Below are positions 3,305-64,000 of a stretch of 64,000 bases of DNA, piece by piece. The notes below the pieces were generated by a model. It was not told the origin of the DNA, did no database searches, and saw nothing but the letters and a program-made list of their open reading frames with translations. The position numbers were made by a program, and so were the translations under genes. Position 1 is the stretch's first letter; each line of letters starts with the position of its first letter. Source of the DNA: Macrostomum lignano (Eukaryota); contig NIVC01000618.1 in the NCBI GenBank assembly GCA_002269645.1, positions 434,001 to 498,000 on the forward strand. The letters are read 5' to 3'.

Positions 3305-4715
<1,411 letters not shown>

Positions 4716-4716
4716 A

Positions 4717-12213: not shown

Positions 12214-12268
<55 letters not shown>

Positions 12269-13053: not shown

Positions 13054-13084
<31 letters not shown>

Positions 13085-13377: not shown

Positions 13378-13468
<91 letters not shown>

Positions 13469-13501
13469 GTGTCTGTCTGTGTGTCTGTGTGTCTATCTGT
13501 G

Positions 13502-13536
<35 letters not shown>

Positions 13537-13645
13537 GTGTCTGTCTGTGTGTCTGTCTGTGTGTCTGTCTGTGTGTCTGTCTGTGTGTCTGTCTGTGTGT
13601 CTGTCTGTGTGTCTGTCTGTGTGTCTGTCTGTGTGTCTGTCTGTG

Positions 13646-13680
<35 letters not shown>

Positions 13681-13727
13681 GTGTCTGTCTGTGTGTCTGT
13701 CTGTCTGTGTGTCTGTCTGTGTGTCTT

Positions 13728-13776
<49 letters not shown>

Positions 13777-16700: not shown

Positions 16701-19700
16701 TGGGATTTGGCCCAATCGTCCTTTTTTCTAAAGCTTCTTTCTCTCTCAAGTACTTTAAATCAGAGCTTAAACTTTCCAGCGTACTTGGAATGACATTATT
16801 TGGTGGCAAATTCTGCTGGCACCCAGACGGCACCACTTGCACCTGCGCTGAGCGAGCAGATCCAAACGGAGACTGCACCTGCGACCGGGCCAACTTCGAC
16901 ACTATCATGTGGTCGTTGGTGACAGTTTTTCAGGTGATTGGCTCTTTAATGATTTTCAAATCGCTTTCTTATCGACTCCTGTTGTCCACGCATATGGGGG
17001 TGCTCTGTAAACCTTTTCACTGTAAAATCTTTCTACTTCATTTTGTTTTGATTATTTGGCCAATATACTATGCTAGCCTTGAAACTTCTGCTCAACAGTG
17101 TAACTTTGAAAACCCCAGGAAGCAGGGGCGTCGCCATGGATTTTATGGTGGGGGGGGGGCAAAGACAAGAATTCAACATGCACATGTACAGGACTAAAAT
17201 CCTAAATTTCCATTATTTTAAGAATCGTGTTGTCAGCGCTCATTTAGGCGCCGCAGGCACCCATTTTGGAACCGCAGGCATTTATTTTAGCGCTGACGGT
17301 ATTCCTTTTAGCGCTGACGGTATTCCTTTTAGCGCCGACGGTATTCCTTTTAGCGCCGACGGTATTCCTTTTAGCGCCGACGGTATTCCTTTTAGCGCCG
17401 ACGGTATTCCTTTTAGCGTCGACGGTATTCCTTTTAGCGCCGATGGTATTCCTTTTAGCGCCGACGGTATTCCTTTTAGCGCCGACGGTATTCCTTTTAG
17501 CGCTGACGGTATTCCTTTTAGCGCCGACGGTATTCCTTTTAGCGCCGACGGTATTCCTTTTAGCGCCGACGGTATTCCTTTTAGCGCTGACGGTATTCCT
17601 TTTAGCGCCGACGGTATTCCTTTTAGCGCCGACGGTATTCCTTTTAGCGCCGACGGTATTCCTTTTAGCGCCGACGGTATTCCTTTTAGCGCCGACGGTA
17701 TTCCTTTTAGCGCCGATGGTATTCCTTTTAGCGCCGACGGTATTCCTTTTAGCGCCGACGGTATTCCTTTTAGCGCTGACGGTATTCCTTTTAGCGCCGA
17801 CGGTATTCCTTTTAGCGCCGACGGTATTCCTTTTAGCGCCGACAGTATTCCTTTTAGCGCCGATGGTATTCCTTTTAGCGCCGACGGTATTCCTTTTAGC
17901 GCTGACGGTATTCCTTTTAGCGCCGACGGTATTCCTTTTAGCGCCGACGGTATTCCTTTTAGCGCCGACGGTATTCCTTTTAGCGCCGACGGTATTCCTT
18001 TTAGCGCCGACGGTATTCCTTTTAGCGCCGACGGTATTCCTTTTAGCGCCGACGGTATTCCTTTTAGCGCCGACGGTATTCCTTTTAGCGCCGACGTTAA
18101 TTCTTTTAGCGCTGACGGTATTCCTTTTAGCGCTGACGGTATTCCTTTTAGCGCCCTGAAGAAAAATTATTGATTACCACAACGGTTTACAAGGTGGGAT
18201 GGGGGACAAACCATTAAAATGTCCCCCCCCATAGCTTTTACTGAGGCGACATGTTCCCCCTGTCCCCCCTGTTGGCGACGCGCCTGATAGGAAGAACAAC
18301 ACCTGATGCTCACATCGAACAGCTCCCTGTCTCTGAACAGCCTACGCACTACTGTTCTCAAACTCCATTAACTTCAGATTCTCACCCAGGAGGACTGGAA
18401 CACGGTGCTGTACAATGGCATGGCCAGAACGTCCCCCTGGGCTGCTCTGTACTTCATTGCTTTGATGACGTTCGGCAACTACGTACTGTTTAATTTGTTG
18501 GTTGCCATCCTGGTTGAAGGCTTCTCCAGCGAGGTAAGCTATGAAAATTCAAATTTTGATCAAACACAATGTTTGATTGCTGGCTTGCAAATAAATGTAG
18601 CCCTCAGTGACACACCGCCTTTGATGAGGCCAGAAAATTCTGCATGTACAGTCACTCCTTCCACAGTGCTTGCAGTGGTCGGCCTTCAAGCTGACTTTGG
18701 AAGATTTTACAACCCAAAATAGATTAATGCAATATTGAGTCAAGGTTATGTGGCATACACACTTGGTAGACAGATTATATGTAAGATTAAAAGGTAAATC
18801 AGGTAAAATATAATTTTTTTGGATATTTCGAGCTAGGAGCATAAAGTATACTACTATATTAGAAAAAAATCTGTGTACATAGTCAGTTCCTCCGCAGAAG
18901 ACACTTGCACGAATATAGAATGCATGATACTGACTTTAGTTTATTGTGTTTTAATTCCCGATTGGCTCGTATCGTACTACTAGTAATTAGTAGTGAAGAG
19001 GAGTTTCTGAAGCAGACAGTCTATTTAAACGCCGCATTTAATTCAGAGAAAATACTATATCATGGAGAAATACCGACTTCAAAAGGTAATGTTTTGCTCT
19101 ACAATAATCTCGGTCTCTATTTATTTCTATATTACTTATAGTACAATACGAGGCCAACTCCTCCTCTAGAGGAGAAAGGGGAAGAACTCCCATCACCGGA
19201 ATTCCATTCCCTGAAATCCATCAGCTGAAATTCCATGACTTGAATCCCATCTTCCAAATCATCTCCAAATCCTCTGTAAAGCCTTTCAAATACCATATCT
19301 TGTTTTCCCTGTTCGCAAAAACTGACTGCCATTGTCCAGACTCAGATTCTTCTGTCTCCTCTCTTCTCTTTTCTCTCCTCTCACGTCTCTCATCTCATCA
19401 CCTTATTTATCTCTTCTCCCTCGTCTTTCGTCTTTCTCTTCTGTCTCCTTTATCCCCTGTTTTCTCCTCTCTCCTCTCTCCTCTCTTCTCTCCTCTCTCA
19501 TCTCTCATCCCTCATGCCTCATCTCACTATTTCTTTCTCCTCTACTCTCAGCTCCTCTCTTCTCTCTCCTCTCATCTCTCCTGTCTCCCTCTGCTATCTC
19601 ATATATTCCCTCTCATCTCCTCTCTCCTCTTTTCTTCTCTCTCCCTCTTCGTTCCCGCCTTACTCCCCTCTTCTCTCCCATCTGTCATGTCTAATCTGTC

Positions 19701-22700
19701 CTCTCTCATCTCTACTCTCTTTTCTATAATCTCTTCTCTCTTCTCTTTTCACTCTTCTCTTTACTCTCTTTACTGACTGACTGAAGATACCAAATCCATC
19801 AAAATCCCTCCGTGAAACAGAAATCCTCTCCGCGAAACAGAAATCCTCTCCGTGAAACTGGGCTCCATGGAAATCCTCTGAGTGAAACTGACATCCATCA
19901 AAATCGTCTCCGTAAAACAGAAATACATCTAAATTCTCTCCACGAAAAATAAATCCTCTCCGTGAAACCGAAAACCATCAGAATACTCCGTGAAACTGGA
20001 CTCAATCGAAATTTTCTCTGTCAAAAAGAACTTAACTTTCAGAATTCATTGGTTAGGGTTAGGGTTCGAGCTGCACAGAGCTGCGTGTTGAATTAATTGA
20101 ATCAATTAATTGCGCAAACCATTTCTCAGTCAGACAGTATCAGTCTTATTTAAAGTTAAATAAACAGTTGCGCAATCTAAATCAACCCTCCAATACACAG
20201 CAGCAGTGAGAAGTTGAACCCTCCCCCAACTTTATCTATTACGTCTCGCAAAACTAAGTACAATCTTTGCAGAAAGTTAAAAGTATGAAAATAGTTTTTC
20301 AAATGCTGTGCTTTTTCTTTTCATATATAAAGCAAACAACTTATATCCCCAAACTCAGCGTTGCAAGATCTTTCCAGCAATATAAGTCTCTCCTCTCAAA
20401 GTTTAAAACTCGAGGAACAGTTAGCGTTTGAAATTTACCGATTTCCCGACTGCTTGCTAGAGAAGCTCGCAAGTTTATTCATTGAATTTCACTGCCAAAC
20501 TAATACACAGGGCTGCCAATAATAAAACCAAATGAATCTCGACACAGTCTATCTATTTACACTGTACAACTGCTATGTACACTCAGCCCAAGCCCAACCC
20601 CCCAGTCTGGGGGAATCATTAAATTGAACTTAACCCCCCAACACGCGGGGGGTTTTATTTGCATTGAACGCAGAACACGCGCACCCACCACCCCTCAATA
20701 CACAGCGGCCCGCGGGCGGAGGTTGGGGTGGCTATTTTTACAAACTGGCTGAAGCCCCAGGCAGAGTGACCAAAGAAGGTTATTGGGGGTTAAAAAAGCA
20801 GTTTTCTGCTTTTTTAGGGATGTTAAAATGTGAAAATTAAAAATTAAAATAGCCTAAAGCCTGCTCCGGAAAATTTGCAGTTTTCCCATATAAGTTTCGA
20901 CGTTGACTTGGCAGAATTGTAGGAGTTCACTTGCTACATACAGACAGACAGACATACAGACAGACAAACATCGCGTCGGTTTTAGTATTAGGATTCTAAC
21001 GCTGTGCTATCAGAGCTTTCTTTTTGTTGTAAAGAGCTGTGATAGCTGCAGCTGTACAGTCTACCGCAACAGATACTTGAGCCTATCTTTGATATTCAAG
21101 ACTATTCTATCACTTTTCTTCTTAGCCATTTAGACTCTACCTGTGGAAACAGGGCCGTTTCTGTTGTGCCGGGACGTTGCATGCGCGCTTTTTATCAACT
21201 CATGACGAGCCATCTATGCTATTGTACCATGCTTTGTAATTGTTTTTTCTTCTGACCTAATTGTTTTCCGAATATTTTGCCATTGTATCGGGAAAGGAAG
21301 TGTACAGACAGACAACACTTTTATTTGGGGAATATTCCTCAGGTGGTTGTCTAACATACATGCTGCTTACTGAAGAGTTCTGATCCTGCACTGGAGACGG
21401 GAGTTTTTGAAGGTGGAATTTCAACAATTTGCAGAAGGCAGCAAACTCAGCTCGAGGCTCCATCAATGATAATGATTGCTCGGAATCGTCTCAGTCGGAC
21501 TCAGACAGCTCAACTTCATCGCATCGCTGTCAGAAGCAGCACCAGCAGCAACAAAATTTTCGACAGGCAAAACTAAGTGAGTGGGACACTGAAGCAAAAT
21601 TGGGTTGACTCTGTAATCAAAATCGCATTCAGTAGGCTTTCTCTAAAAACACTGACTCAATAAAAGTCAGTTTTATTAAGTGGGAAGTTTTGACACCATA
21701 TCTTAGCTCGGATCATTCGACTTCTCGGATCTATAATACTAATAATAATAATAATTGATTACACCTGCTTAAATTGGCGGATGTGCAACCGACCGCAGCT
21801 ATTGCGCGGCGCATCTGAAGGCTGCGTACGGCTGTACAGTCTAAGGACTGGGGGGGTCGCCACACACACCCTAATGCTGGCACCCATTTAACAGCTGGGT
21901 GAACTGAAGCAATACAGAGTCAAGTGGCCTTGCTCAAGGACACAAATTGTTCCAGTGGAATCGGGAATCGAACCCCCGACCTTCAAGTCGTGAGTCCGAC
22001 GCTCCAACCACTAGGCTACAACCCCCGGATCTATAAGAGTATCCGATGACAGTGTCAACTCTATCAGTGCTCAAACGCCTGCAGCCTGCTATAATACAAA
22101 TTTTCTTCACCATCAGAGTGCCTGCCGCCTCGCGAGGCACCCGCAGCCGCTGGCAGCGCCCTCATCCCGCCGATCATCACGCACACGGCGGCCACTCCGC
22201 AGCCGACGCCGCAGGGCAGTCCGGCCAACGAGGGAACAACCAAAGGTGGCAGCGATAGCAGCCCTATCAAGGGTGACCAGCTGAAAACAGCATTCGATAC
22301 AGCTTTTCATTACAGCTCGTCTAGCATAGACACCATCGACAGGTCTCTATCCGTAAGTATGACAGAAGAAACAGCCATTTAGTAACAGTCTCTCTGTACA
22401 GACAGTTACATGTCTCGCATTGCTCAACTGTTCAAACGCAGGCCACAGATCCAACTGGGCAGCAGGTGCTTTCGGCACGGTCTGATTCTCCAGGCGGATG
22501 CAGCAATGCTAACAGGTGAGCACAGTGGCTGGAAAAGTAACAAACTGGTTCTGTGTAGATCGCTATCAAGTTCTAAACCATTATTTTCTAATGAAGATTT
22601 CAACATTTTTAAGCTCTTTGGCTCTTACCGTTTAATTTTTATGTCTTACATTGTAGTGTAAATTTAATGCGTTTAACGCGAACCACGGATACTAGAATAA

Positions 22701-25700
22701 CTAGATGTGCCACTCAGCACATTTGCGTGCAAACTACTTTCAGTTCGGTAGTAAGTTAAACAGAAGTTTTAATGTATTTTTAAAGCCAAAGCTCATTTTA
22801 TTGGCTCTTACCTCCAGTTTAAAGTTTAAACCCCCCAAGCGCGCCTTTCCACATTACCCCCTCGCCCACCCCAATTTTTATTGCCCTTCTCGGAATTCCA
22901 GCCTAAAGCTGCCATGTACATTTCAGTGGACTGGCTAATGTACATTATCGCTGAACCAATTAGCAAGTTGTTTGCGCCTGCTGGCTTGGGATTCTAAACT
23001 TATCAAAGTCGTTTTAGCTGCCTTAATTTTTATAAAATAGCTTATGTATTCTTCTTTGCTACTGAACTGAAAGTAGAAAGCAGTTATTATTTTTTTTATT
23101 AGAGGCAGGGGGGTTGTGTGCACCCTGGCGCACTTTAAGCGACATAGGCACACAACCGGCGAGAGGCATTGCTGCCCATTCCGCCGACTCCCCTGAGCAG
23201 GCATACAAGCGCGCGGATGCGTACGCAGGCACACACTCACACTGGAGTGTACAGCGGCCTTAACTTTATTTTTTCGTTAGGTATGTACACTTCACTGCGC
23301 CTTGGGGGGTTGGCTCTCAAGGCCGTTAATTGCACGAGCAGAGCCAAGCCGAGATTCCAATTCAGCCCCACATTAATGTGACTGCACTTGGAATCGAGCC
23401 TGGGTCGCTGGCACACCAGAGCCTGCGCTACCGCTGGGCTACGGCCCCTTAGAAAGCGTTTTTATTAAGTATTTATGCCTGAGTGGCCATCTAGTTATTT
23501 TAAAGAGACCTGTGACGCGAACTAATAAATAAAGGCAAGAGAACTCTGATCGCTTTCACAACATTGAAATTTACAACGTTGAGCCAATCAAGCTAAATAA
23601 ATCCTGAATTTCACTACATTGAAAAAGTGAGCTGTCGGCCTCTTTCACTTTCATTAACCTTTCTTTATCAATAAAGCTATCAATTATCAATATATCAGCG
23701 TTATAACTTGGACTTCAAATCCTCGATAAATGAATTATACAAGTGTGTATATAGATAATCATGTTGAGTCACTGGACTATGGTTGACCACAAAAGTCTCT
23801 CTGACCCAGATGCTTCACTTTAATCCAGTCCTACCAGCCAATCAAGCGGCGGGACGCTGGCAGCGTTCGCTTCATTCGACTGGGGCGAGCAGTGCGCCTC
23901 GTGCTCGCTTGGCTGGCTGGGGCCCGGCGGACACTCGCACAGGTCAGCAGTCGCTAGCGGGCAAAATGCTTCAAGTGCTACTCGTAACCAGCGCCCGTCA
24001 CTTTAGTCCTGACCCGCAGCCAATCACCGGAATGCACTTTATTCTCGCAAGCAAATCTCAACGTAGCTTATGCTTGATAGCAGTTAAAAGTTACATACTA
24101 GCCAAACGAAAAATACACACAAAAACGGGAGAGAGGCTTGGAAAATGAAACTTTTTTGGTTTGAAAATTCACATTAAATGGGCTTTCTAGTTGACCTTCT
24201 GAAAAGCGTTGTCACATCCACTCTAACTGGTGCTTATCCATTAAAAATGTGACTTATATTCATTCAAATTTGTTCTGTTGCTTTCAGTTTAAATTGGCGC
24301 GTATCACATGTATTTAACAAACGCTTCACTTCTCCACCGCACCACCGCACCACCGTATCGTCGTGACTGCACCTGATAATTTGAGTGGAGGCTAACCATC
24401 TAGCATTAAAATAATCTACCCTTTCGTGTAAATTTTCAATTTATGGGTGTAAATTTTACTTTGCCATAATTTTTTGGTTCAACCGACTCTCAACAGCATA
24501 ATTTTACTAAAATATTTTAGTACGAGATTTTATGTCTAGAATCGTTACTGCGTTTAACCAAATTTATTCTCAAAAAAAGTTCTTGCTTATCAAAATGCAG
24601 TTAATAAAAGGTAATCGATGAAGACAGGGTTGAAAGGGTTAGACTGAGCACCTGGCCGAACTCAAAATCAATATAACTGGAACTTTCTCCACAGTGATTT
24701 CGAGCTAAAGTTCAAAACTTCATTGAACCGCCGACTGTCCTCATTAACAGCTGCAACGGCCATCTGTCAGCTCGAGCACCTGCAGCCGATCTACTCGGTC
24801 GTAACGGTCGCATCTTCCGCCCGGTAGCAGACACCCAGGCTGATACCACTGCCGTCGCCGCGGACGCCTCCGCTGTTGCCACCGCAGCAGTTTCCGCGGC
24901 CTGCGGAGCAATCGGTGTCTCACCTCGCAGTAGTCGCGGCAGCATCGGAATCAGCGTCGGCGGCTGCCGCAGTCACCGGACCGTGACGCCGCAGAACTCA
25001 ATTAGCAGCTGCAAAGACACCATGGGACACGCCTGGGTGAAGGACGGCGGCAAGGAATGTCAGCTGGGAGGTCGCGGACAGCAGTCAAGAAGGGTGAGTT
25101 GCAGGTCTACTGGTTTTTTCATTGATAAATTGTCGGTAACACTTTTGTTTCGTAGTACGCAGGGCCAAAATTTTACTAAACATTATGCTGTACTTAAAAA
25201 CCAATCTCAGAGTCGGTTCTGCCTGGCCAAACTGTTGCCGAAGCCGCACGGCTGCTTCCAGGATAGGCGGGACTATGCCCTGTACTTGCTGCATCCGGAG
25301 AACAGGTTTGAATACGTTTGCTAGCAAGCTATTCCATTTTGCATTAAACACCTAGCCGAAAGACGTCTCGTATTTGTTTTCCACAAATATCAAATTTGCA
25401 GATTTCGCGTCCTCTGCCAGACAATGATTTCTAAGAAATGTTTCGACTATACGGTTCTGTTCTTCATCGCTCTCAACTGCATCACTCTGGCCATGGAACG
25501 ACCATCGATACCTCCTGATAGCATCGTGAGGCAACACCCTTTTTAGTAGTACTAGTTAAATAAGGGAGTCGCTCTGAATTGAGTAAAGGCAATTTTACAC
25601 CAGAACAGCCCCGCTCCACAGTCAGGTAGTGGAGTTCCCAGCCACATCATCCATCTGGCTTCTCTTAACAAAAGATAAATTTCTACTTTATGATATCTCA

Positions 25701-28700
25701 TTAAATCACGTATATACCACTCAATATTTCCTTTCAGGAGCGGCAATTCCTCAGTATTAGCAACAATATATTCACACTGATCTTCGCGATCGAGATGTTG
25801 GTAAAAGTACTGGCCAAGGGCCTGATCATCGGGGATCACACCTATCTGCGAAGCGGCTGGAACGTCATGGACGGTTCTCTGGTCGCAGTGTCTCTGACAG
25901 ACGCATTTGTCACTCTGTTGATGGGCAGCTCCAGCCGGATATTTGGCATCCTGAGAGTGTTTCGTTTGTTGCGGACTCTGCGACCGCTGCGCGTTATCAG
26001 TCGAGCTCCGGGATTGAAACTGGTTGTGCAGACGTTGTTGTCATCGCTGCGGCCAATTGGAAATATAGTGCTCATCTGCTGTACTTTCTTCATCATCTTT
26101 GGGATTCTTGGTAAGTTATTGGGTTTTTTTGTACATTATGTTTGTCTACTTACCTCTAGAAATTTGAATGTTCACAATAGAGTACGCTCGTACATTAACT
26201 TGTTCAAAGTAATATTGCGCTCAATTGGAGGATTAAAAATGTGACCTTGTAGTCAGGTAAACTAAAAAGGTAATTTTTTTGTAAGGATAGAAATATAGAC
26301 TCATTAAAAACTTCCGATAGCCTTCTAGTCTATCCCAATTTTTCAGGTGTACAACTGTTTAAAGGAAAGTTCTACTATTGCGAAGGTCCCGACGTGAAGA
26401 ACGTCGTTAACAAGACCGACTGTTTGGCCGACAAACGAAATGACTGGAAGAAGCACAAGTACAACTTCGACAATTTGGGCCAAGCTCTCATGGCACTTTT
26501 CGTGCTATCGACGAAGGACGGCTGGGTGCAGATTATGTACACAGGATTGGACGCGGTTGGAGAAGACATGCAGCCTCAGGAAAACTACAACGAATTTCTA
26601 TTGGTGTACTTTATCTCGTTTCTACTGCTGGTGGGATTCTTCGTGCTAAACATGTTCGTCGGCGTTGTGGTAGAGAATTTTCACAAGTGCCGCGCCAGCC
26701 AGGAGAAGGAGGAGAAGGCGCGACGGGCGGCCAAACGGGCTCGTCGAATGGAGAAGAAGCGGAAGCGTAAGTTGCACGCAGACCTGACAGCACTTGGGAA
26801 GCCCACGTTGAATGGGAGAGGCTGCTCGGGATAGTCAGTTACTGGATCAAAATGTGAACATCTATACGACTTATAAGATAGCCAGAAAGATTTTTCCCAC
26901 AGGCATTCGCGAGATCCCGTACTGGGCTGGGTACTCACGTTGGCGGCACACAATACACAGCTTTGTGGACAGCAAGTACTTCGACCTGGTGATAGCTACC
27001 ATCATTGGTTTGAACGTTATTACAATGGCTATGGAGTTTTATCTCATGCCGAAGGTAAGAAAAACGTTGAATAAATTCATTTTCCACATTATTTGGGGGT
27101 TGTGCACGAAGAGTTGGCCGAGCGTTTTTCGTCCGATTCACACCTCTGAAAGGTAACCTCTAAGGCACAGAGTGTGTACATGCCTGACGATTAGAAAGTC
27201 AGGGCCGCTGTACTCCTGTGTGAGGGTGAGAATGACTGTACGCTCGTATTAGAATATGCTCAGCGGAATGAATGGAATTGATTTAGAGCTGGTGAAGAAT
27301 TTAGGAGTGGTGATCAATCACTCGAAAACTCCCACTTCTAGATACTGGGGAACAAGTGCCTAGGTGTATGCAAAATCGAATAGCTCTACTGCAGCGGATC
27401 CTTTAGTAGCTTGTATAGACGTCTGGGTTTGGAGTAGTGACTCGTTACATGTACCTCTGTGAGTCGTTGACTTTATCTGTGGGTCGACCAAAAGCGAGAG
27501 CGAATCAGAATTTCTTGACGGTCCTCGAGTTTGGAATTAGCAATAAAACATGCGCCTTAATGAGCAACTGATTTCTCTCTGTTTCTGTAATAGGTCCTCC
27601 TAAAGGGCCTACTTAATCTTAGAGTACTACTTTAAGTAGGGAATTACGGTATGGTTTTAATAGCTCTCTACACTGGTTGGGAGAAGATGCCACCGAAGGC
27701 GTTGCTCCCGCAGCCCTCTTGCAAATATGTATTATATATTTTTTGACATTAATTGTAACCCCAACCTGATATGCCTTCTAAAAAATACAGGAACTTGACT
27801 ACGCGCTAAAGACTGCAAATTACATATTCACATCCGTCTTCATTATCGAGGCAGTGTGCAAAGTGGTCGCCCTTGGCGCTAAGAGATACTTTAAAGACAG
27901 GTAGGTAGAATGACTGCTCTCACCCGTACTATTTTCTAGTTCAGTAGTTGCAGTTGACTGTCTGAAAATGTTGCAAAAGGTCTTAAATTAAAACTGCATC
28001 ATGGTAGCAACAAAAGACTCAAGCGCACTAATTATTTAATAATGCTAAAATTATCAGCACTAGAAAGCAATCTTGACAGTATATTTGTATTGACCGTGGC
28101 TACCTGGCTCATCACTTTCTATTTTGTTCCCGTCATTTACAGCAGGTGAGTTGACAAATTGCTCGCGAGCACGGAATGTCATAGCTGAGAATTGATGACG
28201 CCTTTTATCGTTGATTTTATTTTCGCTGCTTTGTCTGGAGTTTTTTGTTTTTATTCTGTTTCGCCTCTTTTGAAAAATATTTTCATAAGAAGTTTATGAG
28301 CTTTAATATGCTCCTGCCTGCAGCAGATACTCAGTGTGTTGCTTTTATTCTAGAATAGTCAGCTCTGCAAAGCGTGTGCATTTTTTGAGCACTGCATATA
28401 CGAGCGTCGTATTTATAGCTTTCGCCGATTCTGCAGATACTTTGTAGAGGTTTGATGAAATGAAGAGCTAGGCGGTGCTTCTTTTTGTTTTATTAGCATA
28501 TTAGGGAGGAAGTAAGAAAATGGAAATAGTGAGAAGTTGGCAATGCGCCTGCCGTATGTTTATAGATATGATTTGGTTTCCAAAAAGTAATATTTCTTAC
28601 AGTATAACAAATTTAAAGTGCAGATAAATTACAGATAATTTTACCGATATTGACTATGCTTTTTTAATATAATAAGTAAATTAATAATCATTAATAAATG

Positions 28701-32260: not shown

Positions 32261-32900
32261 GTGTCACTGGTGAGTAGGTAGTGTCACTGGTGAGTAGCTA
32301 GTGTCACTAGTGAGTAGCTAGTGTCACTGGTGAGTAGCTAGTGTCACTGGTGAGTAGCTAGTGTCACTAGTGAGTAGCTAGTGTCACTGGTGAGTAGCTA
32401 GTGTCACTAGTGAGTAGCTAGTGTCTCTAGTGAGCAGGTAGTGTCAATGGTGAGTAGCTAGTGTCTCTAGAGAGCAGGTAGTGTCACTGGTGAGTAGGTA
32501 GTGTCACTGGTGAGTAGGTAGTGTCACTGGTGAGTAGGTAGTGTCACTGGTGAGTAGGTAGTGTCACTGGTGAGTAGGTAGTGTCACTGGTGAGTAGGTA
32601 GTGTCACTGGTGAGTAGGTAGTGTCACTGGTGAGTAGGTAGTGTCACTGGTGAGTAGGTAGTGTCACTGGTGAGTAGCTAGTGTCACTGGTTAGTAGCTA
32701 ATGTCTCTAGTGAGCAGGTAGTGTCACTGGTGAGTAGGTAGTGTCACTGGTGAGTAGCTAGTGTCACTGGTGAGTAGGTAGTGCCACTGGTGAGTAGCTA
32801 GTGTCACTGGTGAGTAGGTAGTGTCACTGGTGAGTAGCTAGTGTCACTGGTGAGTAGCTAGTGTCACTGGTGAGTAGCTAGTGTCACTGGTGAGTAGGTA
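32261..32900. repeat. 20-bp minisatellite (32 copies)
   Basis: GTGTCACTGGTGAGTAG(G/C)TA. Confidence 0.96.
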
Positions 32901-33789
32901 GCGTCACCAAATTGTATTACCGGTGTTTCCATAGCAACTCTTCAAAAACAACTAGACTCCCTATCAATTCAAATTTATTCTTAAACTACTAGCTAGATTG
33001 TCACTTTTCTCGATTGCATCTAGTTTTGAAGTTTTTGCAAACGTATTTTGCACCTTTGGTCTCCTCCATTCTTACAAGTAACTTAAGTAAATCCCATTCT
33101 TTAACTATATTAGCATACTTGTTTCTCTGTCGTCATCTGTCTTTCCCTGTTACTATGCTAGTTTTCAATGCGCCCGTTATTTATTGTGCAGAGTCTTGTG
33201 TCGAGTCAGTAACTGTAATTTGCGAAAATTAATCGAACTCAAATACAAACGCGGTTTGGTTTGCAGCACAATTAACTCAATCTGGTAGCCATGACGAAGC
33301 CAAAATTATGAGTACACTCTTGTTTCTTGAGGCGTCTCTCAGCAGATTTACAATGCACTTCAATAATAGTAACATTTTATAATCACAAAAAGGGACAACA
33401 AAAATAAAAGGGGGGTGGCTCAAGACTCACTCGTAACTGCCAACGACAAAGAGTGACGCACAGAAAACCGTAGCATAATTATATGTTGAGACCGAACTTA
33501 AAGCATGAATGAAATCTGGTGGCAAGATTTTTCTAGCTGGGAGATTTAATCGCATTTTCACATTTCAAAATTCAGCTTTGAATATGACAGAGCGGCTGGT
33601 CATTTGGCCAATGGGTACAGTGAGTTTTGACGAGCAGGAGAAAAGTACTCCGAATCGGGTAAATCCTGTGGGGAATCCTACTCGTATACAAACCACCGAA
33701 GCAACGGGATTCTTAGAGATAAAATCCCAAGTAGTCCCAAAAAATCCCTGAACTCCAGTCAAGTTCTTTTAGACAATGTTATCACAATC

Positions 33790-34115: not shown

Positions 34116-54725
<20,610 letters not shown>

Positions 54726-56368
54726 CAGGTCAGGGATCGCCTCAGGTCTAGGATTCCTTCAGGTCTATGATCGCTTCAGGTCACCGCTTCAGGTGAGGGA
54801 TGGTTTTTATTTGTAAAGAGCTTACAAACAAATATTGCACTCATTTACCCTAAATGACTACTTTCAGTAAGCGTATTTCGATTCCGATAAATGTTTTCAA
54901 TGTAACTTCTAGCATGCAGGGCTTGAACGGCTTTGTATAACTAATATGATTCTCTGATTTAGACAAAATAATATAGAGGCTGCTTAACATACACGCGTTC
55001 ATGCATACATATATAGAGTCATTAAAAAGTTAACAGATTACTGGTAGACATGGCAGGCAACCGGCAGATCAGATGCCAGAATTGCCGATCCTGCTCAGTT
55101 CCCAATGCAGGCTCTCAACTCAATGCGGTACAGTTTCCGGGTCTCAGACAGGTCACAATTGATATGAAATCAGGTATCGGATGAGAACTGAGGGGAGAAG
55201 CGGGACAGGAAGATGGAGTGGTTATTTATATTGCTGGTGCCGGGATGCCTGCCACCTCCGCGCAGTGAAGGCTTTTCAGAGTGGCGTACACAACCGGGGT
55301 GCTATTTGTTTTTCTGGAGTTGACATGGTCGCTCAACCAGATAATATGGTTCGCACAGATCCCATTTTTATTGTTTGGTGTAGCTACAAATATTGGGTGC
55401 TACAACTAAGAAAAAGAGTGAAAGCTAGGCTTGCCTGCATTGGGACTAGCCAATGACAGGACTGGAATGGGGCAGGAGCGGTTTTACCGGTGCCTGAGTG
55501 CCTGAGTGACGGGCTTCGACCATAGACAATTTATGAGAGTTAGCTGAATGCTACGAGTATGCTGAAACAGAGGGATACAACATACGAGCGTAACTTTACT
55601 TCCCTCTTGCCAGTTACCAGCTTTGCTTTTGCATCAAATTTAACTCATCCGGAGATATTGGTATTTGAGTTTTCGCTTTTGAAAATTAATACACGGTTTG
55701 CGAGTGTTGCATTTTTCTTTCTGAAGGTGTCTTTGGCCTATGGATTTATTATCCGTGCTTATAATTAAATATCAATACCAGCCGTACAGACGAACTTCAT
55801 CGATGCTCATATCAGGGTTTGATTTTTAAATCTAGAAATCGTAATCCAGACTTGATGGAAGAGCAGCTAGCAGCTAGGAATGGCCTCGAAGCAGACTCTC
55901 CGAACATTCAAAGAGCAACTTTTCTCATTTTATCAGGTCCATGGTGCCATCCTAAATCACTAAGTGATAGCGCAAGCGTTAAAGCGAATATAATGTCGAC
56001 TTCTTTGTGCTGTGCAACCTAAACCGCTAGAGACTGTTTAAACATTACTGTGTATGCGACTATAAGGTCAAATGGACCGCAATGAATTGAATACACTTGC
56101 ACGGAGAAGCTCTCGAGATTTACCTGCTTGATTGACAGCTGTCGTCAAGCAAACAAAAGCTGCATCATTTTTGTGGGAAAGCAAGACAGTCTGCTCCGCT
56201 CTGACATGTGAAAGCAGAAAAGTCAAACAACGTCACTCTTTCGACCGGAAACACGTGCCAATCCGATGCGCATAAATTCAGAACTCCCAACTGCTCAAGA
56301 AGTCAACTTCAAACTCGACTCAATCTACACACAGCTCGAAGACTCGACTCGACTCGACTCAAGCAATC

Positions 56369-56563
56369 ATGAAGTGGCAACTCGCTCTCGGACTTCTGCT
56401 GTGCGCAGCCCTGGCCGTCGCCATGCCCAGCCAGGAGGAGAAGGCCATGGCCGAACGTGTGCTGGAGGAGACTCTGTCCAACCTGGACGAGTCCAGCGTG
56501 TCGGAGGAGCAGATTCCGAAGCTGAAGAAGAAGATCTTCCGTGTTCATGTTAGGTTCGGTTAG
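56369..56563 (+). CDS. Small secreted prepropeptide (64 aa); candidate RFamide-like neuropeptide or cationic peptide precursor
   Basis: Signal peptide MKWQLALGLLLCAALAVA, acidic pro-region, then KLKKKIFRVHVRF-G-stop. GC3-rich codons, A at -3, upstream CCAAT/TATA-like box. Confidence 0.7.
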   Translation: MKWQLALGLLLCAALAVAMPSQEEKAMAERVLEETLSNLDESSVSEEQIPKLKKKIFRVHVRFG

Positions 56564-57483
56564 ATAAGCACTCAGATACGCCTGAGATTGACAAGGCTTC
56601 ATCGAAGATTATCTGGCCCTGACAACTGACCTGACTCTGAACTTTTACTCGTTTGCGAATAATCCTTAAGCGTTGACAGTAAAATTAGTGATTACAGTTG
56701 AACCAAATATACAAACGAAACACCAACAATACTCTGTTTAAGCAACCCATGTAACTAAAAGCTCCTCCTTCTTAATTATTGTTTTTTATTTCTGAAAGTC
56801 GTGATTCGGTTTGGCCATAGTAGAGGAGTCATTAATTTATCATATTGCTTTTCTTTCCTTTAAAGGTCCAATGTTTTGACTCCTTATTTTGACTTCTTAT
56901 CCCTGAGATAGGAAAATGAAACACAAAGCCAAATGAAGCAGTCGTTTTTATACGAGATCACCTACTTAAGAATAGTAAGATAAGATTTTGAACCGAATCA
57001 TTTTATAGTGTGTGACTGTGCACCGATAAAATTGAATAGAACTTCAAACTTCAACGTGTGTGTTCACCAGTAAGGTTTTGGATTTGTGGTTTAGCTGTCT
57101 AAAAGTAAGGACTCAGAAGCTGGTCCTGACCTATCACGAAATTGAGTCTTAATTTTACTCGTAAACACCCAATTTTACTCGGAGGCTCAATCTTGTACCT
57201 ACTTTGTAGCAATCTACAGGCAGTTTACTGAATTTCACATATAAGTCCGTAAATTTAATGGTCTTTGCTGTTTCCCTCACCGCATTGATAAGTTATTTAA
57301 GCGGAAATTTACAATGAGAAGGACTGTAATCTAACCTATTCATGTCGCAGATATTTTCAAAGATTTTTTGGGATGAATATGCCTTTTTCTAATTTCAATT
57401 TTTTTTTCAGAGAATGTGTCCCCGAAGATACCGCTAGGCATGTGTCTTTGGGTATGGGTCATTGGAAGTATGGTTGATGAAAA

Positions 57484-57845
57484 GGGGGGCTGTAGCCCAG
57501 CGGTAGCGCAGCTGCTCTGGTGTGCCAGCGACCCAGGCTCGATTCCAAGTGCAGTCACATTAATTTGGGGCTGAATTGGAATCTCGGCTTGGCTCTGCTC
57601 GTGCAATTAACGGCCTTGAGAGCCAACCCCCCAAGGCGCAGTGAAGTGTACATGCCTAACGATAATATAAAGTTAGGGCCGCTGTTCACTCCTGTGTGAG
57701 TGTGTGCCTGCGTACGTATCCGCGCGCTTGTGTGCCTGCTCAGGGGAGTCGGCGGAATGGGCAGCAATGCCTCTCGCCGGTTGTGTGCCTATGTCGCTTA
57801 AAGTGCGCCAGGGTGCACACAACCCCCCTGCCTCTAATAAAAAAA
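57484..57845 (+). mobile_element. tRNA-derived SINE family 2, copy B
   Basis: GGGGGGCTGTAGCCCAGCGGTAGCGC...GGCTCGATTCC head, poly-A tail, 14-bp TSD ATGGTTGATGAAAA (57470 and 57846). Confidence 0.88.
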
Positions 57846-59485
57846 ATGGTTGATGAAAATGTCCATGAGAATGTGTATAATATGAGTTTTATTTGTCTCC
57901 CTACTAATATCTTACTCGTATTCGCTCGATCGCTCGATTCGCTCGAAACCTGTCTTTAGCTGAAGTTGGTTTTTGTCGTTATCCTGAAAAGTTTTTCAAT
58001 TTTAAATCTGTTATGCGACCAAAGCAGTCGTCCATATACGAGCTATTATTTAATGATATGCAACTAGTTACTGAAAAGTCAAGCAATTAAATTAGTACAA
58101 TAATTAAACTCTACCCTCAGTCGTTAAAATTCGCTTAGGGAACACACTGTAGGACTGCCGGTATTTGCTAGCTCATTTGGTGCGTGAACCTCGTCTGGGG
58201 GCACATCGCGTCACTTGAATTTTACTTGACGCGATTTCCCAGTATTGTACTTGAACAAGTGGGAGAAAATTCCATACTCGAATCCCCCATCGTCACAGAA
58301 TGGAGCTGCCAAAGCACACAGAGGCCTGAAATAATTGCACGCGATAACTACTTGAAATATCTTCACTCGGGTATCTGCATTAGGCTTTGAAAAGGACATC
58401 GCTGTCTATTGGATACCGAACTTTTGAGAACTTCTTGCCAGTCTTAGTCAATAGCCTTCCAGTGCACCAATGTTATTTGGTTGAACTTGTACTGACACAG
58501 CATTAGAGCAGTACTTGACTTGTTTGATTGTCAAGATGTCATCAAACAAAAAGTACTGCAGACTCGCAGACAGCAAGCCAGTCACTGCTCCGCTCTTCTC
58601 ACGTGAAAGCCTTCAACTCAAACAGCGCCGCTCCTCGGACCGGAAAACGTGCCAATCTGATACGCATAAATTCGCAGCCAGTGTTTTCATCAAAATCGTG
58701 GTGTCTGCAGTCACAGATAGTAAATTTTAGTGTTGAAGATGTCGAAATTATATTTGAACTGCTCGTGAACATGATTGCAACAATATTTTTTCATTAGACA
58801 CTTTTTAGAGAGACAATTAAAAAACTATCCAATAAAATCGCGGCCCATGATCCAGCCGGCGTCCATGTCATCAAGAAGATATCGCGGCAAAATATTTTTG
58901 CTGAAAAACATTAATCACGCGCTCGTAGCTGCTGACCGCTTAAGACAACTTCAGAATCAGAATCGACCAGAGAGCGACCAAAATGAATCAGACAACTGGT
59001 TGGATTATTGCGAGCTAGTCTTCGCGGAAAAGCCAAGCTTGAACCGAGCCCATTCGAGGCCTGATAGAAATACAAATGCTCGCACTCTGTTCCGAGAGGG
59101 TACTGAGGTAGCAGCTCTGCAGATGTACTCACTCGAGATTTATCTGGCTTCTGCGCCATTCAATGTGTCCCTCAATTCTTGTTCTCAAGCCCTGGAATCA
59201 TTGTACTGCACAAGTGCGGAAAAGGCTGAGCGGTAAGTACATGTATGATCTCTACCAAATCAGCTAGAAAAAATTATATGGCACCCTCAGCAGCTTTGGC
59301 ACCTTTTCCTTGAGGGTCATGTTAACGAGGTTTACAGTGGCCGAATCGTGGACTAGGGAACAGATTGCCATTGCACTGCCTCAAGTTCCAGTACTAGCAG
59401 CAATGCATTAAACTGATGGGCACCTAGGCTCTCTCAGACAATGCTACACATCACTTGAGGGAAGGCTGCTTTGGAGGTATTTTAA

Positions 59486-59832
59486 TGTTCTGAAACAATC
59501 ATAAATAGCTATTTGATGAGCCCTCCTGGTTGCTAGAATAACTCGAGATGAAAGACAAACTATATGCTGCGCTATTGAAACGATGAAAAACGAAAAGGGG
59601 CTCTTGAGCGAGATGCTCTGGGTCGATATATTTAATGAGCTGAGTGAAAGCGTACAATACACGTGAGCGTAATGTGGGGTGGGGCGATCAGTGAAGAATG
59701 AAAGTGGTGCGATCAATAATTAGGGACTGTACGTATGAGCAAAATAAATATGTTAGCCTAATTGAACGTACATGTAGCTATTGCAAACGAAAAGTTTAAG
59801 AAATACCACGAGACAGTGGCAGCTCCAGAACA
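59486..59832 (-). repeat. BEL/Pao 3' LTR (347 bp)
   Basis: TGTTCTG...CAGAACA terminal inverted repeat directly after the PPT. Confidence 0.85.
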
Positions 59833-60451
59833 TACCCCCCACCTTGACATGTCTATGGCAAAAACAAAATAATGATGCAAAAATGTAATTTTGAAAATGA
59901 GTGGCAGTGGAAGCAAAACCTATGAGATAAAGATGCAGAAAAGTTATAACGCAGAACTTACGCAATTCGTACTTGTACAAAACTTGACTAAACAAAATTG
60001 TCTTGGTGGGCTCTGTTACAGTAACGAAAAATGTAGAAAAAAAAGAAACGCGCTTGAGTTCGAAAACATAAACTGCAGTTGTAGCATTTCACGAAAAAAG
60101 ATTTTAAGACGATCAACCCATTACCAGAGAGTGATGTGATTACAAGACAAAGGACAACGTGAAATCGCGATGCAACATGGTTAAATTTGGATTACGATAT
60201 AAATAATAATCGATTCAAAAAATTAACAACCTAAATTACGAAGGCAAACACCAAACTCAAAATTTAAACATGACTGAAATAAACGTATTTGACAAACAAA
60301 CAAAATAAAACTAAGTAATCATTCGCATACCGAAAAAAACACTGTCTAGAAAGCGACAAAAATGATAATGACAAAATGACGAAAACGAAAATACGAATCG
60401 ACACAGGGATTAACAGTTACAGTCCATCGATCAGTGAGTCATAGTCAGCCT

Positions 60452-63400
60452 TCAATCAGTAATCAATGGGCACAGTCTGTTGATTGGCCGCGTCAGAACC
60501 TTGTCCGCCAGCTGCACTTTTACTACTCGAACATGGCCGTCTCGACCCGGGTACACCTCCAGGACTCGAGCCAGTGGCCAATGACCCCGAGGGCTGTCCG
60601 GACAGACATACAGCACGACGTCCCCAGGCTTGAGGTCGGGCTGCTCTCGCCGCCATTTGGTTCTCGCACCGAGGCCGGGCAGCCACTCTCGAAGCCATCG
60701 CCGCCAAAACGACTGCACCAGCCGCTGCACGTAGCGCCACCGCTTGGTTGGGTTGAACACCTCGTCAGCCGAGATCTCCGGTGCCAGCTGTCCGCCAACG
60801 TGCCCGTACAGGAAGTGCGCTGGCGTCAGGACCGGATCGTCACCAGGATGGGACGACTGGTAGGTCAAAGGCCGTGAGTTCAGCAGCAACTCTGCTCCGG
60901 TAAATGCTGTTACAAGCTGCTCATCGCTGACTTCTGCCGATCTCAGGATCGCGTTTATCGCTCTCTTTGCTGATTTTATCATTGACTCATGCACGCCGCC
61001 GAAGTGCGGAGCCGCGGGCGGATTAAAGTGCCACTTGATCGGTACGTGAGATGTGCGTGACTGCAATGCGTTCTTGTCCATCGACTTGCACAGCTCCTTT
61101 AGTTCTCTATCCGCACCAACAAAATTAGTTCCATTGTCTGAGAAGATTTCCAGAACTTGACCTCGGCGATTGATCATGCGAAACAACGCGTTTAGGAAGC
61201 TGCTTGCATCAAGGCCGTACGCCATTTCTAAATGAACTGCACGCGTTGCCATACAAGTGAAGAGCGCAAAGTACCGCTTCTGACGCACACGTCCCCGACC
61301 CTGTTTCGTCAGGAATGGACCTCCGAAATCTATTGATACTTTCGTAAATGCTCTCAACGGTTCTAGCCGACTGGGAGGCAGTGGTGCCATCAACTGCGAA
61401 GCTGGCTGTGCCTTTCTTCTCCTGCACTCAGCACACTTGACTTCCCAAGCTCGGATGGCCTCTCGGGCAGCTGGGATCCAAAATCGAGCAGTCACTGCAG
61501 CAAGTACTTGATTGGTGCCCGCGTGATACGCTTTTTCGTGATGGTGCTTGATTATCAATTCTGTCACGTGATGGCACTTTGGCAAGATGATTGGTGATCT
61601 GATACTAACCGGCAATGCTTCGGCCAACTGTAGACGACTCTCTGAGCGAAGAACGTCGCTAGGATCGAGTCTGGGATGCATTCTAGCCAGCTTGCTGCTC
61701 TCAGAAACGCTATTGTTCTTCCTCAAGGCGGAAAGCTCCGTGCTGAATGCATCTTGCTGCACATCCTTGATGATTCTTAACTCCGCGTCTTCTAGCTCCG
61801 ACGCCTGCAGCTCTCCTCGAGTTCGGTACTGTGGTTCGAAGCGACAATTGTTGGAAAATCTGCTAATCCAGGCATTTACCCTCAGGAATTTCATCCAGCT
61901 GGAGAACTTGCTCGGATCAAGCCGCTCTACTTGATGCTTTCTTTGCTCGCTGGTGACCATTGTTGCAGACATGACCGTTTCGGACGGGACTGAATCTTTC
62001 GCCGAACCTTTCGTCTCCAGGTCTGCTGGTCGCTCCAACCTGGTACTTGGCCACTTGTAATCGTCATGATGTAAAAACTCTGGACCGTTTTTCCATTTCT
62101 GATCCTCGGCCAGCTGAGTTATCGTTGCGCCTCTTGACAGCAGATCGGCAGGATTGCACGCCGTTGGCACGTGTCTCCACTGGTTCGGATCAGTTGCCTG
62201 CTGGATTTCTCCGATGCGATTCGCAACGAACGGTTTAAAGAAGCGTCCTCTTCCACGAATCCAAAACAGAACGTTCATGCTGTCCGACCAGAATACCGCA
62301 TCTTTGATGTTCATCTCTAGTGCCTTGGCAATCTTGACCGCTAGATTCAGCCCAATGACCGCTGCCATCAGCTCCAGCCTCGGAATGCTCATAGTTGCTA
62401 TGGGTGCAACTCGAGACTTGGCAGCGATGAGCCGAACGGATATCGAGGCGTCGGTGTACTTGCATCGTAGATAACACACTGCTCCGTAGGCCTTCTCCGA
62501 AGCATCGACAAAGCAGTGAAGCTGAGACTGCGTAGGTACGCAAGAGAACTGCAGACAGCGATAAACTCGAAAGCAGTTCAGCTTCGTCAGGTCAGCACAC
62601 CATGCTTGAATCCTCCTTTGCAGAGCCTCGTCCGGCGCTTCATCCCAATCAAGGCCGCTGCACCAGAGCTCCTGCAGTAGTATCTTTGCCTGCGCGGTGA
62701 AAGGTGCTATCAATCCGAGAGGATCGTACATTGAAGCCAATCTCTTTAGCAGAATCCTCTTTGACTTGACTGGTCTCAGCTCGCTATCAGCAACAAAGGT
62801 GAATTCATCGTCCTCACTTTTCCAGACTACTCCAAGCGTCTTCGAAACTGGCAACGGCTGACCATCCAGGCTCACCTCCGCGACTCTATCCTCTGGTGCT
62901 ACACACGCAAGCAATGCTCTCGAGTTTGAAATCCACTTCCTAGCGTGCATACCAGCTCGCTCCCACAATTGGCTCAGCTCCTGATACAACTGAATAGCCT
63001 CTGAATCAGTCTTCTTCGAATCCAGGCAGTCATCCATGTAAGTTGACTGGAGCACTGTTTCTGCGGCCGATGGAAACTCCTGCTTCAGCTTCTTTGCGTG
63101 CTCCTGAGTCACGAATTGCGCCAGAAATGGTGAGCTCGTTGCTCCAAAAACCACTCGGTTGAACTCGAATGTCTGTGGTACCTTTGTCGGATCCATGTCC
63201 CGCCACAGAAAGCTGTGCGCTGCCCGATCTTCTGGTGCGATCGCGATTTGCAAGTACATTTCAGAAATGTCGCAAGCAACCGCCACTGGATGCCTCCTGA
63301 AGCGCAGGAGCACATCAACCAGATCTTTCTGAAGCTTCGGTCCTGCCAGCATCAGGCTATTCAACGACTCCTCACCGCCAGCTGAAGCATCAAAGACGAT

Positions 63401-64000
63401 GCGCACTTTGGTAGTTGCCTTATCCATTCGAACCACTGGGAAATGAGGAAGGTGATACCTGTTCGCTGGTTGTTGCTCATGCTCCAGTACTCTTCTGATG
63501 TAGCCAACATTTTCGTAGCGACTGATGACGTCCTGATACTGCTTTGCTAGATCCGGATCTTTGCGGAGCCTCTTCTCGGTATTTGCAAGCCGCCTGATAG
63601 CCATTTCAAAGTTGCTATCATTAAACGTGACATCCGGTTTCCACGGAATGCCAACTTGGTATCGCCCATCGAAGAACTTTAGCGATGATCGAGTTCTTTC
63701 CAAAGCGAGCTGCTCTGCATTAGTAAATGAAGATGGTTCGATGCTTCTCACCTCTTCTACTTCCCAAAACTGGCGTAACAGTGGCGCTAGATTCTCAGAC
63801 CCGCCTCGGCTGAAGAACGTGTTTGCAAACAACGCGTGCTCCGAAGCTCCATCAACTCTACCGATACAAGTCCAACCTAAAGGTGTCAGCCGCGCTTGCG
63901 GATCTCCGGGGTCGCCGGTCACTTCCAACTGTGATGCATGCAAGTCTGGGTGATCGACTCCGATCAGCAAGTCAACCTCCGCTGGCGTTTGCATTCTTGG
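60452..64000 (-). CDS. pol: BEL/Pao polyprotein (end of PR, RT, RNase H/Peptidase A17, integrase, DUF5641-like tail), 5'-incomplete
   Basis: LPHFPV..TTKVRIVFDAS, YMDD, FVDASEKAYGAVCYLR, PRLEL, H..H/C..C, DFGGPF, SDNGTNF, FWRRWLREWL. Confidence 0.95.
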   Translation of the reverse strand, partial: PRMQTPAEVDLLIGVDHPDLHASQLEVTGDPGDPQARLTPLGWTCIGRVDGASEHALFANTFFSRGGSENLAPLLRQFWEVEEVRSIEPSSFTNAEQLALERTRSSLKFFDGRYQVGIPWKPDVTFNDSNFEMAIRRLANTEKRLRKDPDLAKQYQDVISRYENVGYIRRVLEHEQQPANRYHLPHFPVVRMDKATTKVRIVFDASAGGEESLNSLMLAGPKLQKDLVDVLLRFRRHPVAVACDISEMYLQIAIAPEDRAAHSFLWRDMDPTKVPQTFEFNRVVFGATSSPFLAQFVTQEHAKKLKQEFPSAAETVLQSTYMDDCLDSKKTDSEAIQLYQELSQLWERAGMHARKWISNSRALLACVAPEDRVAEVSLDGQPLPVSKTLGVVWKSEDDEFTFVADSELRPVKSKRILLKRLASMYDPLGLIAPFTAQAKILLQELWCSGLDWDEAPDEALQRRIQAWCADLTKLNCFRVYRCLQFSCVPTQSQLHCFVDASEKAYGAVCYLRCKYTDASISVRLIAAKSRVAPIATMSIPRLELMAAVIGLNLAVKIAKALEMNIKDAVFWSDSMNVLFWIRGRGRFFKPFVANRIGEIQQATDPNQWRHVPTACNPADLLSRGATITQLAEDQKWKNGPEFLHHDDYKWPSTRLERPADLETKGSAKDSVPSETVMSATMVTSEQRKHQVERLDPSKFSSWMKFLRVNAWISRFSNNCRFEPQYRTRGELQASELEDAELRIIKDVQQDAFSTELSALRKNNSVSESSKLARMHPRLDPSDVLRSESRLQLAEALPVSIRSPIILPKCHHVTELIIKHHHEKAYHAGTNQVLAAVTARFWIPAAREAIRAWEVKCAECRRRKAQPASQLMAPLPPSRLEPLRAFTKVSIDFGGPFLTKQGRGRVRQKRYFALFTCMATRAVHLEMAYGLDASSFLNALFRMINRRGQVLEIFSDNGTNFVGADRELKELCKSMDKNALQSRTSHVPIKWHFNPPAAPHFGGVHESMIKSAKRAINAILRSAEVSDEQLVTAFTGAELLLNSRPLTYQSSHPGDDPVLTPAHFLYGHVGGQLAPEISADEVFNPTKRWRYVQRLVQSFWRRWLREWLPGLGARTKWRREQPDLKPGDVVLYVCPDSPRGHWPLARVLEVYPGRDGHVRVVKVQLADKVLTRPINRLCPLITD

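Follow-up and report, generated by a model that had tools for sequence, protein, structure and literature searches.

A tandemly arrayed family of secreted prepropeptides with variable C-terminal tails in Macrostomum lignano, and a possible role in host defence

A small gene and its surroundings

The window analysed here is a 64,000-nt stretch of the Macrostomum lignano genome (contig NIVC01000618.1 of assembly GCA_002269645.1, positions 434,001 to 498,000, forward strand), which carries a small gene together with the exons of a channel gene, retrotransposons and dense repeat arrays (Table 1). The small gene is a 64-codon ORF on the plus strand (56369–56563), and translation of the window DNA showed that its earlier description as a 64-codon single-exon ORF was exact. 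Its GC3 is 0.78 against a GC content of 0.41 in the flanks, which bears out the coding-like bias that had been reported. An in-frame TAA at 56273–56275, upstream of the ATG, excludes a longer ORF at this position, and an A occupies position −3 relative to the ATG. Length by itself is no evidence of a gene here, because the whole window contains 105 ATG-ORFs of at least 64 aa. The ORF is nevertheless a real gene, as confirmed by intact paralogous ORFs, purifying selection on the signal peptide and a called gene at the locus.

Table 1. Features of the window, numbered from its first nucleotide
Feature	Position	Strand	Remarks
(CAGA)353 array	3305–4716		
21-mer arrays	6644–7505; 17285–18155		
20/41-mer array	9051–9781		
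12-mer array	13020–13785		
20-mer array	32261–32907		
Voltage-gated cation channel exons	~11400–26850	+	S6/linker-like exon at 11421–12182; Ion_trans (PF00520) at 15899–16291, 25795–26244 and 26394–26834
Ty3/gypsy-type retrotransposon	35720–39855	+	zinc-knuckle gag-like ORF at 35720–36202
Duplication unit (upstream block, ORF, 3′ flank)	56063–56897	+	88–90% identity to L001 9756–10597 and L004 646–1476
Near-invariant upstream block GACCGGAAACACGTGCCAATCCGATGCGCATAAATTC, putative core promoter	56243–56279	+	37 nt, near-identical in 10 paralogues
E-box CACGTG in upstream block	56252–56257	+	
CCAAT in upstream block	56258–56262	+	
TATA-like CATAAAT in upstream block	56271–56277	+	
Conserved 5′ leader, including a (CGACT)n run	56280–56368	+	paralogue upstream alignment
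ORF	56369–56563	+	product MKWQLALGLLLCAALAVAMPSQEEKAMAERVLEETLSNLDESSVSEEQIPKLKKKIFRVHVRFG-stop
Signal peptide MKWQLALGLLLCAALAVA (residues 1–18)	56369–56422	+	near-invariant in the family; pN/pS 0.08
Acidic propiece MPSQEEKAMAERVLEETLSNLDESSVSEEQIPKL (residues 19–52)	56423–56524	+	net charge −6 over 34 residues
KKK (residues 53–55), putative proprotein-convertase site	56525–56533	+	conserved; last two Lys are the family KK
Predicted mature octapeptide IFRVHVRF	56534–56557	+	hydrophobic/basic alternation; fastest-diverging part of the gene
GGT (Gly64, putative amide donor) and TAG stop	56558–56563	+	GGT plus TAG or TAA kept in paralogues
Probable 3′ UTR	56564–56730	+	paralogue downstream alignment
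Conserved 3′ motif TCTGAACT	56636–56643	+	
AATATA-type hexamer	56706–56711	+	conserved; ~145 nt after the stop
Probable insertion	56898–58349		~1.45 kb; absent from L001 10597–10644 and L004 599–646; 57563–57847 matches L003 12720–12993
Relic of upstream block	58569–58673	+	~79% identity (blastn); E-box mutated to AACGTG, TATA-like motif intact; not followed by a family ORF
BEL/Pao LTR retrotransposon	59527–64000 and beyond	−	intact 1180-aa pol ORF at 60452–63994

An exact look-up identified the called gene at NIVC01000618.1 490,276–490,563 in GCA_002269645.1, a 95-aa partial CDS whose product is the stop-to-stop frame enclosing the 64-aa ORF. The database entry being this longer model, an exact look-up of the 64-aa product gave no match. 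The suggestion in the earlier note that gene finders often miss such ORFs does not hold for this one. The Mlig_3_7 annotation derives from genome-guided assembly of RNA-seq data (PMC5730564), and the RNA-seq-guided gene model at the locus therefore implies a transcript, although the paralogues are too similar for this copy to be singled out. The possibility that the gene has no transcript, raised in the earlier note, is to that extent not borne out. A splice donor near 56538–56559 that would remove the RFG-stop ending was also considered, but was rejected because the genomic paralogues all retain the G-stop ending, as do the gene models based on RNA-seq.

The predicted product has the layout of a secreted prepropeptide, with a signal peptide, an acidic propiece, a basic site and a C-terminal peptide followed by Gly, as the earlier note had correctly recognised; its description of the precursor was otherwise accurate, but skipped MPSQ after the signal peptide and IP before KLKKK. 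According to the −3/−1 rule, the signal peptide would be cleaved after AVA, while a proprotein convertase may cut after KK. A Gly-stop or Gly plus basic residues at the C-terminus is a classical amidation signal, so the terminal Gly probably serves C-terminal amidation.

Conservation extends beyond the coding sequence. Further upstream than the block the sequence diverges among the ten paralogues, and the block itself is a putative promoter. The annotated 5′ ends of relatives lie 39 to 153 nt upstream of the ATG, and some annotated relatives start upstream of the block, which could therefore be either a core promoter or part of the leader. On the 3′ side, the AATATA-type hexamer is a candidate polyadenylation signal. 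L001 and L004 are the equivalent loci on two other contigs, and in both of them the relic of the upstream block lies downstream of the counterpart of the window gene; the relic therefore predates the duplication of these loci. Each of the two equivalent genes (L001:10067 and L004:981) encodes FVRVHVRFG.

The ~1.45 kb that follow the duplication unit are missing from both equivalent loci and are probably an insertion. Further along, the BEL/Pao element (pol domains Peptidase_A17, RVT_1, integrase and DUF5641) separates the window gene from the next paralogue, ending ~440 bp upstream of the ATG of that paralogue. The terminal repeats of the element are identical: a 306-bp segment (59527–59832) matches a copy ~6.5 kb further along the contig at 100% identity (L002 9355–9660), which suggests a young element of ~6.8 kb.

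The pol ORF of the Ty3/gypsy-type element, 1195 aa long and intact, encodes protease, RT, RNase H and integrase, and (GATA)n and (AGAT)n arrays lie on either side of the element. To judge by eye, the channel gene resembles one for a T-type calcium channel; minisatellites fill its introns. Micro- and minisatellite arrays are unusually dense at 1–20000 and elsewhere in the window, and they account for long spurious ORFs. Rfam and tRNA scans of the window returned no matches.

A tandem family with a constant scaffold and variable tails

The gene had been described as an orphan, but it belongs to a large tandem multigene family in M. lignano. Fourteen relatives emerged from a database search, each annotated as 'hypothetical protein BOX15_Mlig...' of M. 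lignano, and the window ORF is 66–95% identical to P0002–P0014. Profile searches of 1.84 billion representative proteins and a 5.8-billion set brought the relatives to 28 clusters at 90% identity (about 68 distinct sequences), with the wider family detected by the family profile at E from 1e-42 to 7e-4. All members carry M. lignano names except one, which comes from a Logan contig of run SRR31628392, and these protein-set searches found no homologue bearing the name of another organism. The window ORF is a member of this unnamed family, here called the Macrostomum 'MKWQLALGLLLC' prepropeptide family, as it has the shared signal peptide, acidic propiece, KK and C-terminal peptide, along with the shared upstream block and the tandem arrangement.

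When the window and four other genomic loci (L001–L004) were scanned with a regex, 14 intact single-exon ORFs were found: five in L001 (within 20 kb), four in L004, two each in L002 and L003 and one in the window, with degraded copies beside the intact ones. The family lies mostly in tandem arrays, and the window gene is the edge member of the NIVC01000618.1 cluster, the next copies being ~10, 14 and 19 kb further along the contig; the window itself contains no second family ORF, only the relic of the putative promoter.

In an alignment of 14 sequences, M1, K2, W3, Q4, a GLLL core, E23, E24, K25, K54 and K55 are invariant. Across the family, P20, E23, E24 and K25 are invariant or nearly so, while in the wider alignment K55 is invariant and K54 is present in at least 90% of sequences. 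The propiece of the family is probably helical; sub-threshold Pfam matches to PF22991 on this acidic helix were treated as compositional.

The tails behind this scaffold cannot be aligned across subfamilies. Short tails of 6–10 residues followed by Gly-stop comprise IFRVHVRF, FVRVHVRF, IFRVRVRI, IFRVRVHI, FVRLRVRI, IFRVRARIHI, WLRVRARVRI, FVRVRVRL, FVRVRARIRL, FIRARVRVRL, FIHIHF and GFHVHFH, and a further short tail, FHLHLP, is followed by GK-stop. Long tails span 18–33 residues and are Arg-rich, helical or Pro/Arg-rich, frequently with a GK or GKR ending: the Arg-rich WRMRHRIHFRWRRVYGVVHRVYRGYRRIIC ends in GKR-stop, the Arg-rich WRIRFRRIRIRWRRVYRVVRTAYRIYRHLPFP and WLLRRIRIRWRRVLRVASRVYRIYRYLPI as well as FRIRIRWGRVARNVLRLL end in GK-stop, WRIKSACKIFRRLLHLARKCYAKK, which has two Cys, ends in Gly-stop, and both WRRRRRFRWRKAIRVAGKVAKAVL and the Pro/Arg-rich FLRVRLPRVRMPRVRLPRVRLPRLRVRFRWSKK end without Gly. 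A Gly-stop, GK-stop or GKR-stop recurs throughout the family, and the terminal Gly, the loss of which in homologues the earlier note saw as an argument against its proposal, is present in 13 of the 14 close relatives and in all 14 genomic copies. The RF-Gly ending has a much narrower distribution, as it is confined to the window gene, P0002 (L001:10067) and L004:981, so that RFG ends two of the 14 aligned relatives and one more genomic duplicate. Since other paralogues have RI, RL, HI or HF ahead of the Gly (RIG, RLG, HIG or HFG), an RFamide ending is not a hallmark of the family.

Divergence along the precursor was estimated by pooled Nei-Gojobori counts over equal-length paralogue pairs, which are small counts from pairs that are not independent; these gave pS 0.077 and pN 0.006 for the signal peptide, pS 0.034 and pN 0.049 for the propiece, and pS 0.284 and pN 0.172 for the tail. 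The signal peptide is thus under purifying selection (pooled pN/pS 0.08), and the tail diverges several-fold faster than the signal peptide and propiece at synonymous and non-synonymous sites alike. The idea that the tail is under positive selection was dropped, as the tail pN/pS is 0.61, and gene conversion that homogenises the 5′ part of the genes could account for the fast divergence of the tail just as well.

Propiece and tail are matched in charge. Over 17 members, the net charge of the propiece (−2 to −10) is strongly and inversely correlated with that of the tail (0 to +14; Pearson r = −0.93), a coefficient that ignores relatedness and may represent three or four independent contrasts. 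Short-tail members taken by themselves show the same trend. Long-tail members carry a charge of +7 to +14, and IFRVHVRF a charge of +2 plus one His. The hydrophobic moment of every short tail is greatest at or near 180 degrees, as expected for the alternation of a beta-strand, and for IFRVHVRF the maximum lies at 180 degrees, whereas four long tails peak at a helical 105–110 degrees.

Several members depart from the common structure. A paralogue on the minus strand of L002 (8695–8913) lacks the usual stop after ...WLRVRARVRVG and reads on through SRRRSRSG-stop. The UniRef model of a comparable gene, P0015, has another ending; its name, 'SERPIN domain-containing protein', is probably an annotation error that stems from the older ML2 assembly. 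In P0011, 23 propiece residues are duplicated internally, and the P0035 gene model fuses two signal-plus-propiece starts in frame; these structures suggest that crossing-over within the arrays was unequal or that gene models were merged. The Logan contig of SRR31628392 (929 nt) carries P0018, which has a Pro/Arg-rich tail of 33 residues, behind a diverged version of the family upstream layout, and may derive from another Macrostomum species or from a copy missing from the M. lignano assembly.

Possible functions of the peptide

On balance, we modestly favour the reading that this member of an undescribed secreted prepropeptide family gives rise to a membrane-active host-defence (antimicrobial) peptide. 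The 18-residue signal peptide would direct the precursor into the secretory pathway, where the acidic propiece would neutralise the cationic tail during transport. A proprotein convertase would then cut after the invariant KK and the terminal Gly would be converted to a C-terminal amide, yielding IFRVHVRF-NH2 (about 1071.65 Da) or a K-extended form, a short beta-strand amphiphile predicted to act on membranes outside the cell. Membrane activity and the antimicrobial role are proposed by analogy with the long-tailed, strongly polycationic relatives that share the scaffold.

Host-defence families are typified by a constant prepro region, a hypervariable cationic cargo, a charge-balancing propiece and lineage-restricted tandem expansion. 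The window gene and its relatives combine a signal peptide with an anionic propiece that offsets the cationic tail, the tail is hypervariable compared with the prepro region, and the predicted mature peptide is amphipathic and cationic. This layout is favoured by the charge compensation, the fast divergence of the tail and the flags raised by a published AMP pipeline. An amidated cationic antimicrobial-type peptide had been the second option of the earlier note, and it is this option that the family-level evidence supports. Against it, eight residues at +2 to +3 lie at the extreme short end for natural AMPs and are a typical neuropeptide size, and KK is a rarer convertase site than KR or RR.

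The pipeline was a screen for helminth AMPs, in which supplementary file S5 lists BOX15_Mlig024774g1/g2 as positive with 100% of AMP predictors and BOX15_Mlig001477g4 as positive with 82%, all signal-peptide positive (PMC10414684). The N-termini of the family members listed there are near-identical to the signal peptide of the window gene, and the same entries are labelled 'Same genome' and 'Ungrouped', not 'Prioritised'; groups present in only one genome were discarded by the pipeline (PMC10414684). The processing steps themselves are available to flatworms, in which dibasic processing and the amidating enzymes PHM and PAL have been reviewed, including in Schistosoma (PMC9042389).

A secreted cationic peptide with some other extracellular role is possible but doubtful; it might be a toxin or allomone directed at predators or prey, a peptide with a part in mating or in the seminal fluid, or a beta-sheet material that self-assembles in mucus, rhabdites or adhesive secretions. 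A lineage-restricted, tandemly expanded and rapidly diverging family of secreted proteins would also suit toxin and reproductive protein families, and strictly alternating hydrophobic/basic peptides are known to form beta-sheet assemblies. The charge-balancing propieces and the AMP-predictor scores speak for membrane-active peptides as a class, whether their role is antimicrobial or toxic. Counting slightly against such roles, no gene ID of the family occurs in the searched parts of M. lignano supplements on germline and neoblasts, ageing, intestine, ploidy and reproduction-related genes, in which the ID systems differ. One apparent hit in the searched part of a supplement, Mlig024774.g6, was rejected, being a PRP19 gene that shares the cluster prefix with the family (PMC5816591).

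The first proposal of the earlier note was a new RFamide neuropeptide. As such a neuropeptide or hormone, IFRVHVRF-NH2 would be processed in neurons and act through an FLP receptor or an RFamide-gated channel, which we consider unlikely. The peptide does consist of eight residues after a dibasic site with an Arg-Phe-Gly-stop ending, and the FLPs of flatworms and nematodes have -IRFamide, -FRFamide or -VRFamide endings. However, RF-Gly is limited to the window gene and its two duplicate loci, and close paralogues have other endings. In neuropeptide families the receptor-binding C-terminus is conserved while the rest of the precursor drifts; here the signal peptide and propiece are conserved and the C-terminus is variable, a reversal that disfavours a neuropeptide. 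The same scaffold also bears polycationic tails of 24–33 residues with a charge of +9 to +14, and we know of no neuropeptide model that explains peptides of 18–33 residues and +7 to +14 charge on one scaffold. Five members were searched by hmmscan and had no match to the Pfam FARP family (PF01581) at E ≤ 10, and those short-tail peptide sequences that were looked up were absent from the literature searched. The secretory processing layout, which would suit a neuropeptide precursor, is the same in neuropeptides (PMC9042389).

The two readings could also be combined, with the window copy and its two duplicates being host-defence genes that acquired an RFamide ending and now act on RFamide receptors or channels of the worm, its mates, predators or prey. 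This is a long shot, but if it were true, the RFamide-ending copies would represent a transition from an antimicrobial-type to a neuroactive peptide caught in the act within one family. That the ORF is a chance ORF or a decaying pseudogene copy, as its commonplace length and the degraded copies and promoter relic nearby might suggest, is barely credible given its intact state in 14 genomic copies, the strong constraint on the signal peptide, the conserved upstream block and 3′ UTR motifs, the high GC3 and the RNA-seq-based gene model.

Relation to known peptide systems

A close parallel to the architecture of the family is found in the preprodermaseptins of frog skin (FSAP, PF03032), another multigene family in which a conserved signal peptide and acidic propiece are followed by a dibasic site and one hypervariable cationic peptide, often amidated through Gly; there, too, the prepro region evolves far more slowly than the mature peptide. 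There is no homology between the two families, which belong to different phyla; the frog precursors have a KR site instead of KK, and the Macrostomum tails are as short as 6–10 residues and show a beta-type alternation. Cathelicidins (PF00666) likewise place unrelated cationic C-terminal peptides (helical, Pro/Arg-rich or short and amidated, such as indolicidin) behind one pro-scaffold, but the Macrostomum family has, in place of the cathelin domain, an acidic and probably helical propiece of ~35 residues, and a putative release at KK in place of elastase-type cleavage. For the five members searched, hmmscan returned no match to PF03032 or PF00666 at E ≤ 10, and neither the precursor nor two long tails matched a related solved structure in sequence searches of the PDB.

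Natural amidated AMPs of eight residues exist, including temporin-SHf (FFFLSRIF-NH2) and the jelleines, and designed (hydrophobic-Arg/Lys)n amides such as beta-sheet peptides of the (IRIK)2-NH2 type are active. The Macrostomum peptide is not homologous to these ultrashort AMPs, but shares with them a length of about eight residues, a C-terminal amide (predicted here) and a richness in Phe, Ile, Val and Arg, and with the designed peptides a strict hydrophobic/cationic alternation. Flatworm FMRFamide-like peptides (YIRFamide and GNFFRFamide) are comparable in that a short Arg-Phe-Gly peptide follows the basic site of a secretory precursor. They differ in that RF is not conserved among the Macrostomum paralogues, which lack a FARP match, and in that the Macrostomum precursor is conserved and its peptide variable.

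Among the helminth AMP-like peptides of Irvine et al. 2023, two long-tail family members were predicted to be AMP-like, while the short-tail subfamily, including the window gene, was not found in the available part of file S5, and the portion of the main text consulted contains no description of the family (PMC10414684). Ten Mlig gene IDs, the start of the signal peptide and five tail peptides were not mentioned in the full-text literature searched. In that literature, the family has therefore been brushed against by an AMP screen but not described, and the gene adds a non-homologous case to a familiar kind of system, in a phylum from which few such systems are on record. The gene-encoded AMPs of marine flatworms were called "largely unexplored" in a 2025 review (PMC12466427).

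If the family does serve host defence, it would represent an independent origin of the design of a constant prepro region and a hypervariable cationic tail that is known from frogs and mammals. M. lignano would then offer a compact, expanded peptide family that includes some of the shortest natural amidated candidates (6–10 residues) and has a short, near-invariant upstream block that may be a shared promoter. Stable transgenesis is feasible in this species (PMC5730564).

One branch of the family is rich in His. This subfamily comprises P0007, P0026 and relatives (L001 319–507 and 4165–4353; L004 2898–3086 and 6732–6920), and has the tails FIHIHF-Gly and GFHVHFH-Gly. The window peptide has Arg at its third position and is without an ATCUN motif, whereas the tails of the His subfamily, if cut after KK, would begin with X-X-His, which we take to be the ATCUN copper/nickel-binding motif of histatin-5 and the piscidins.
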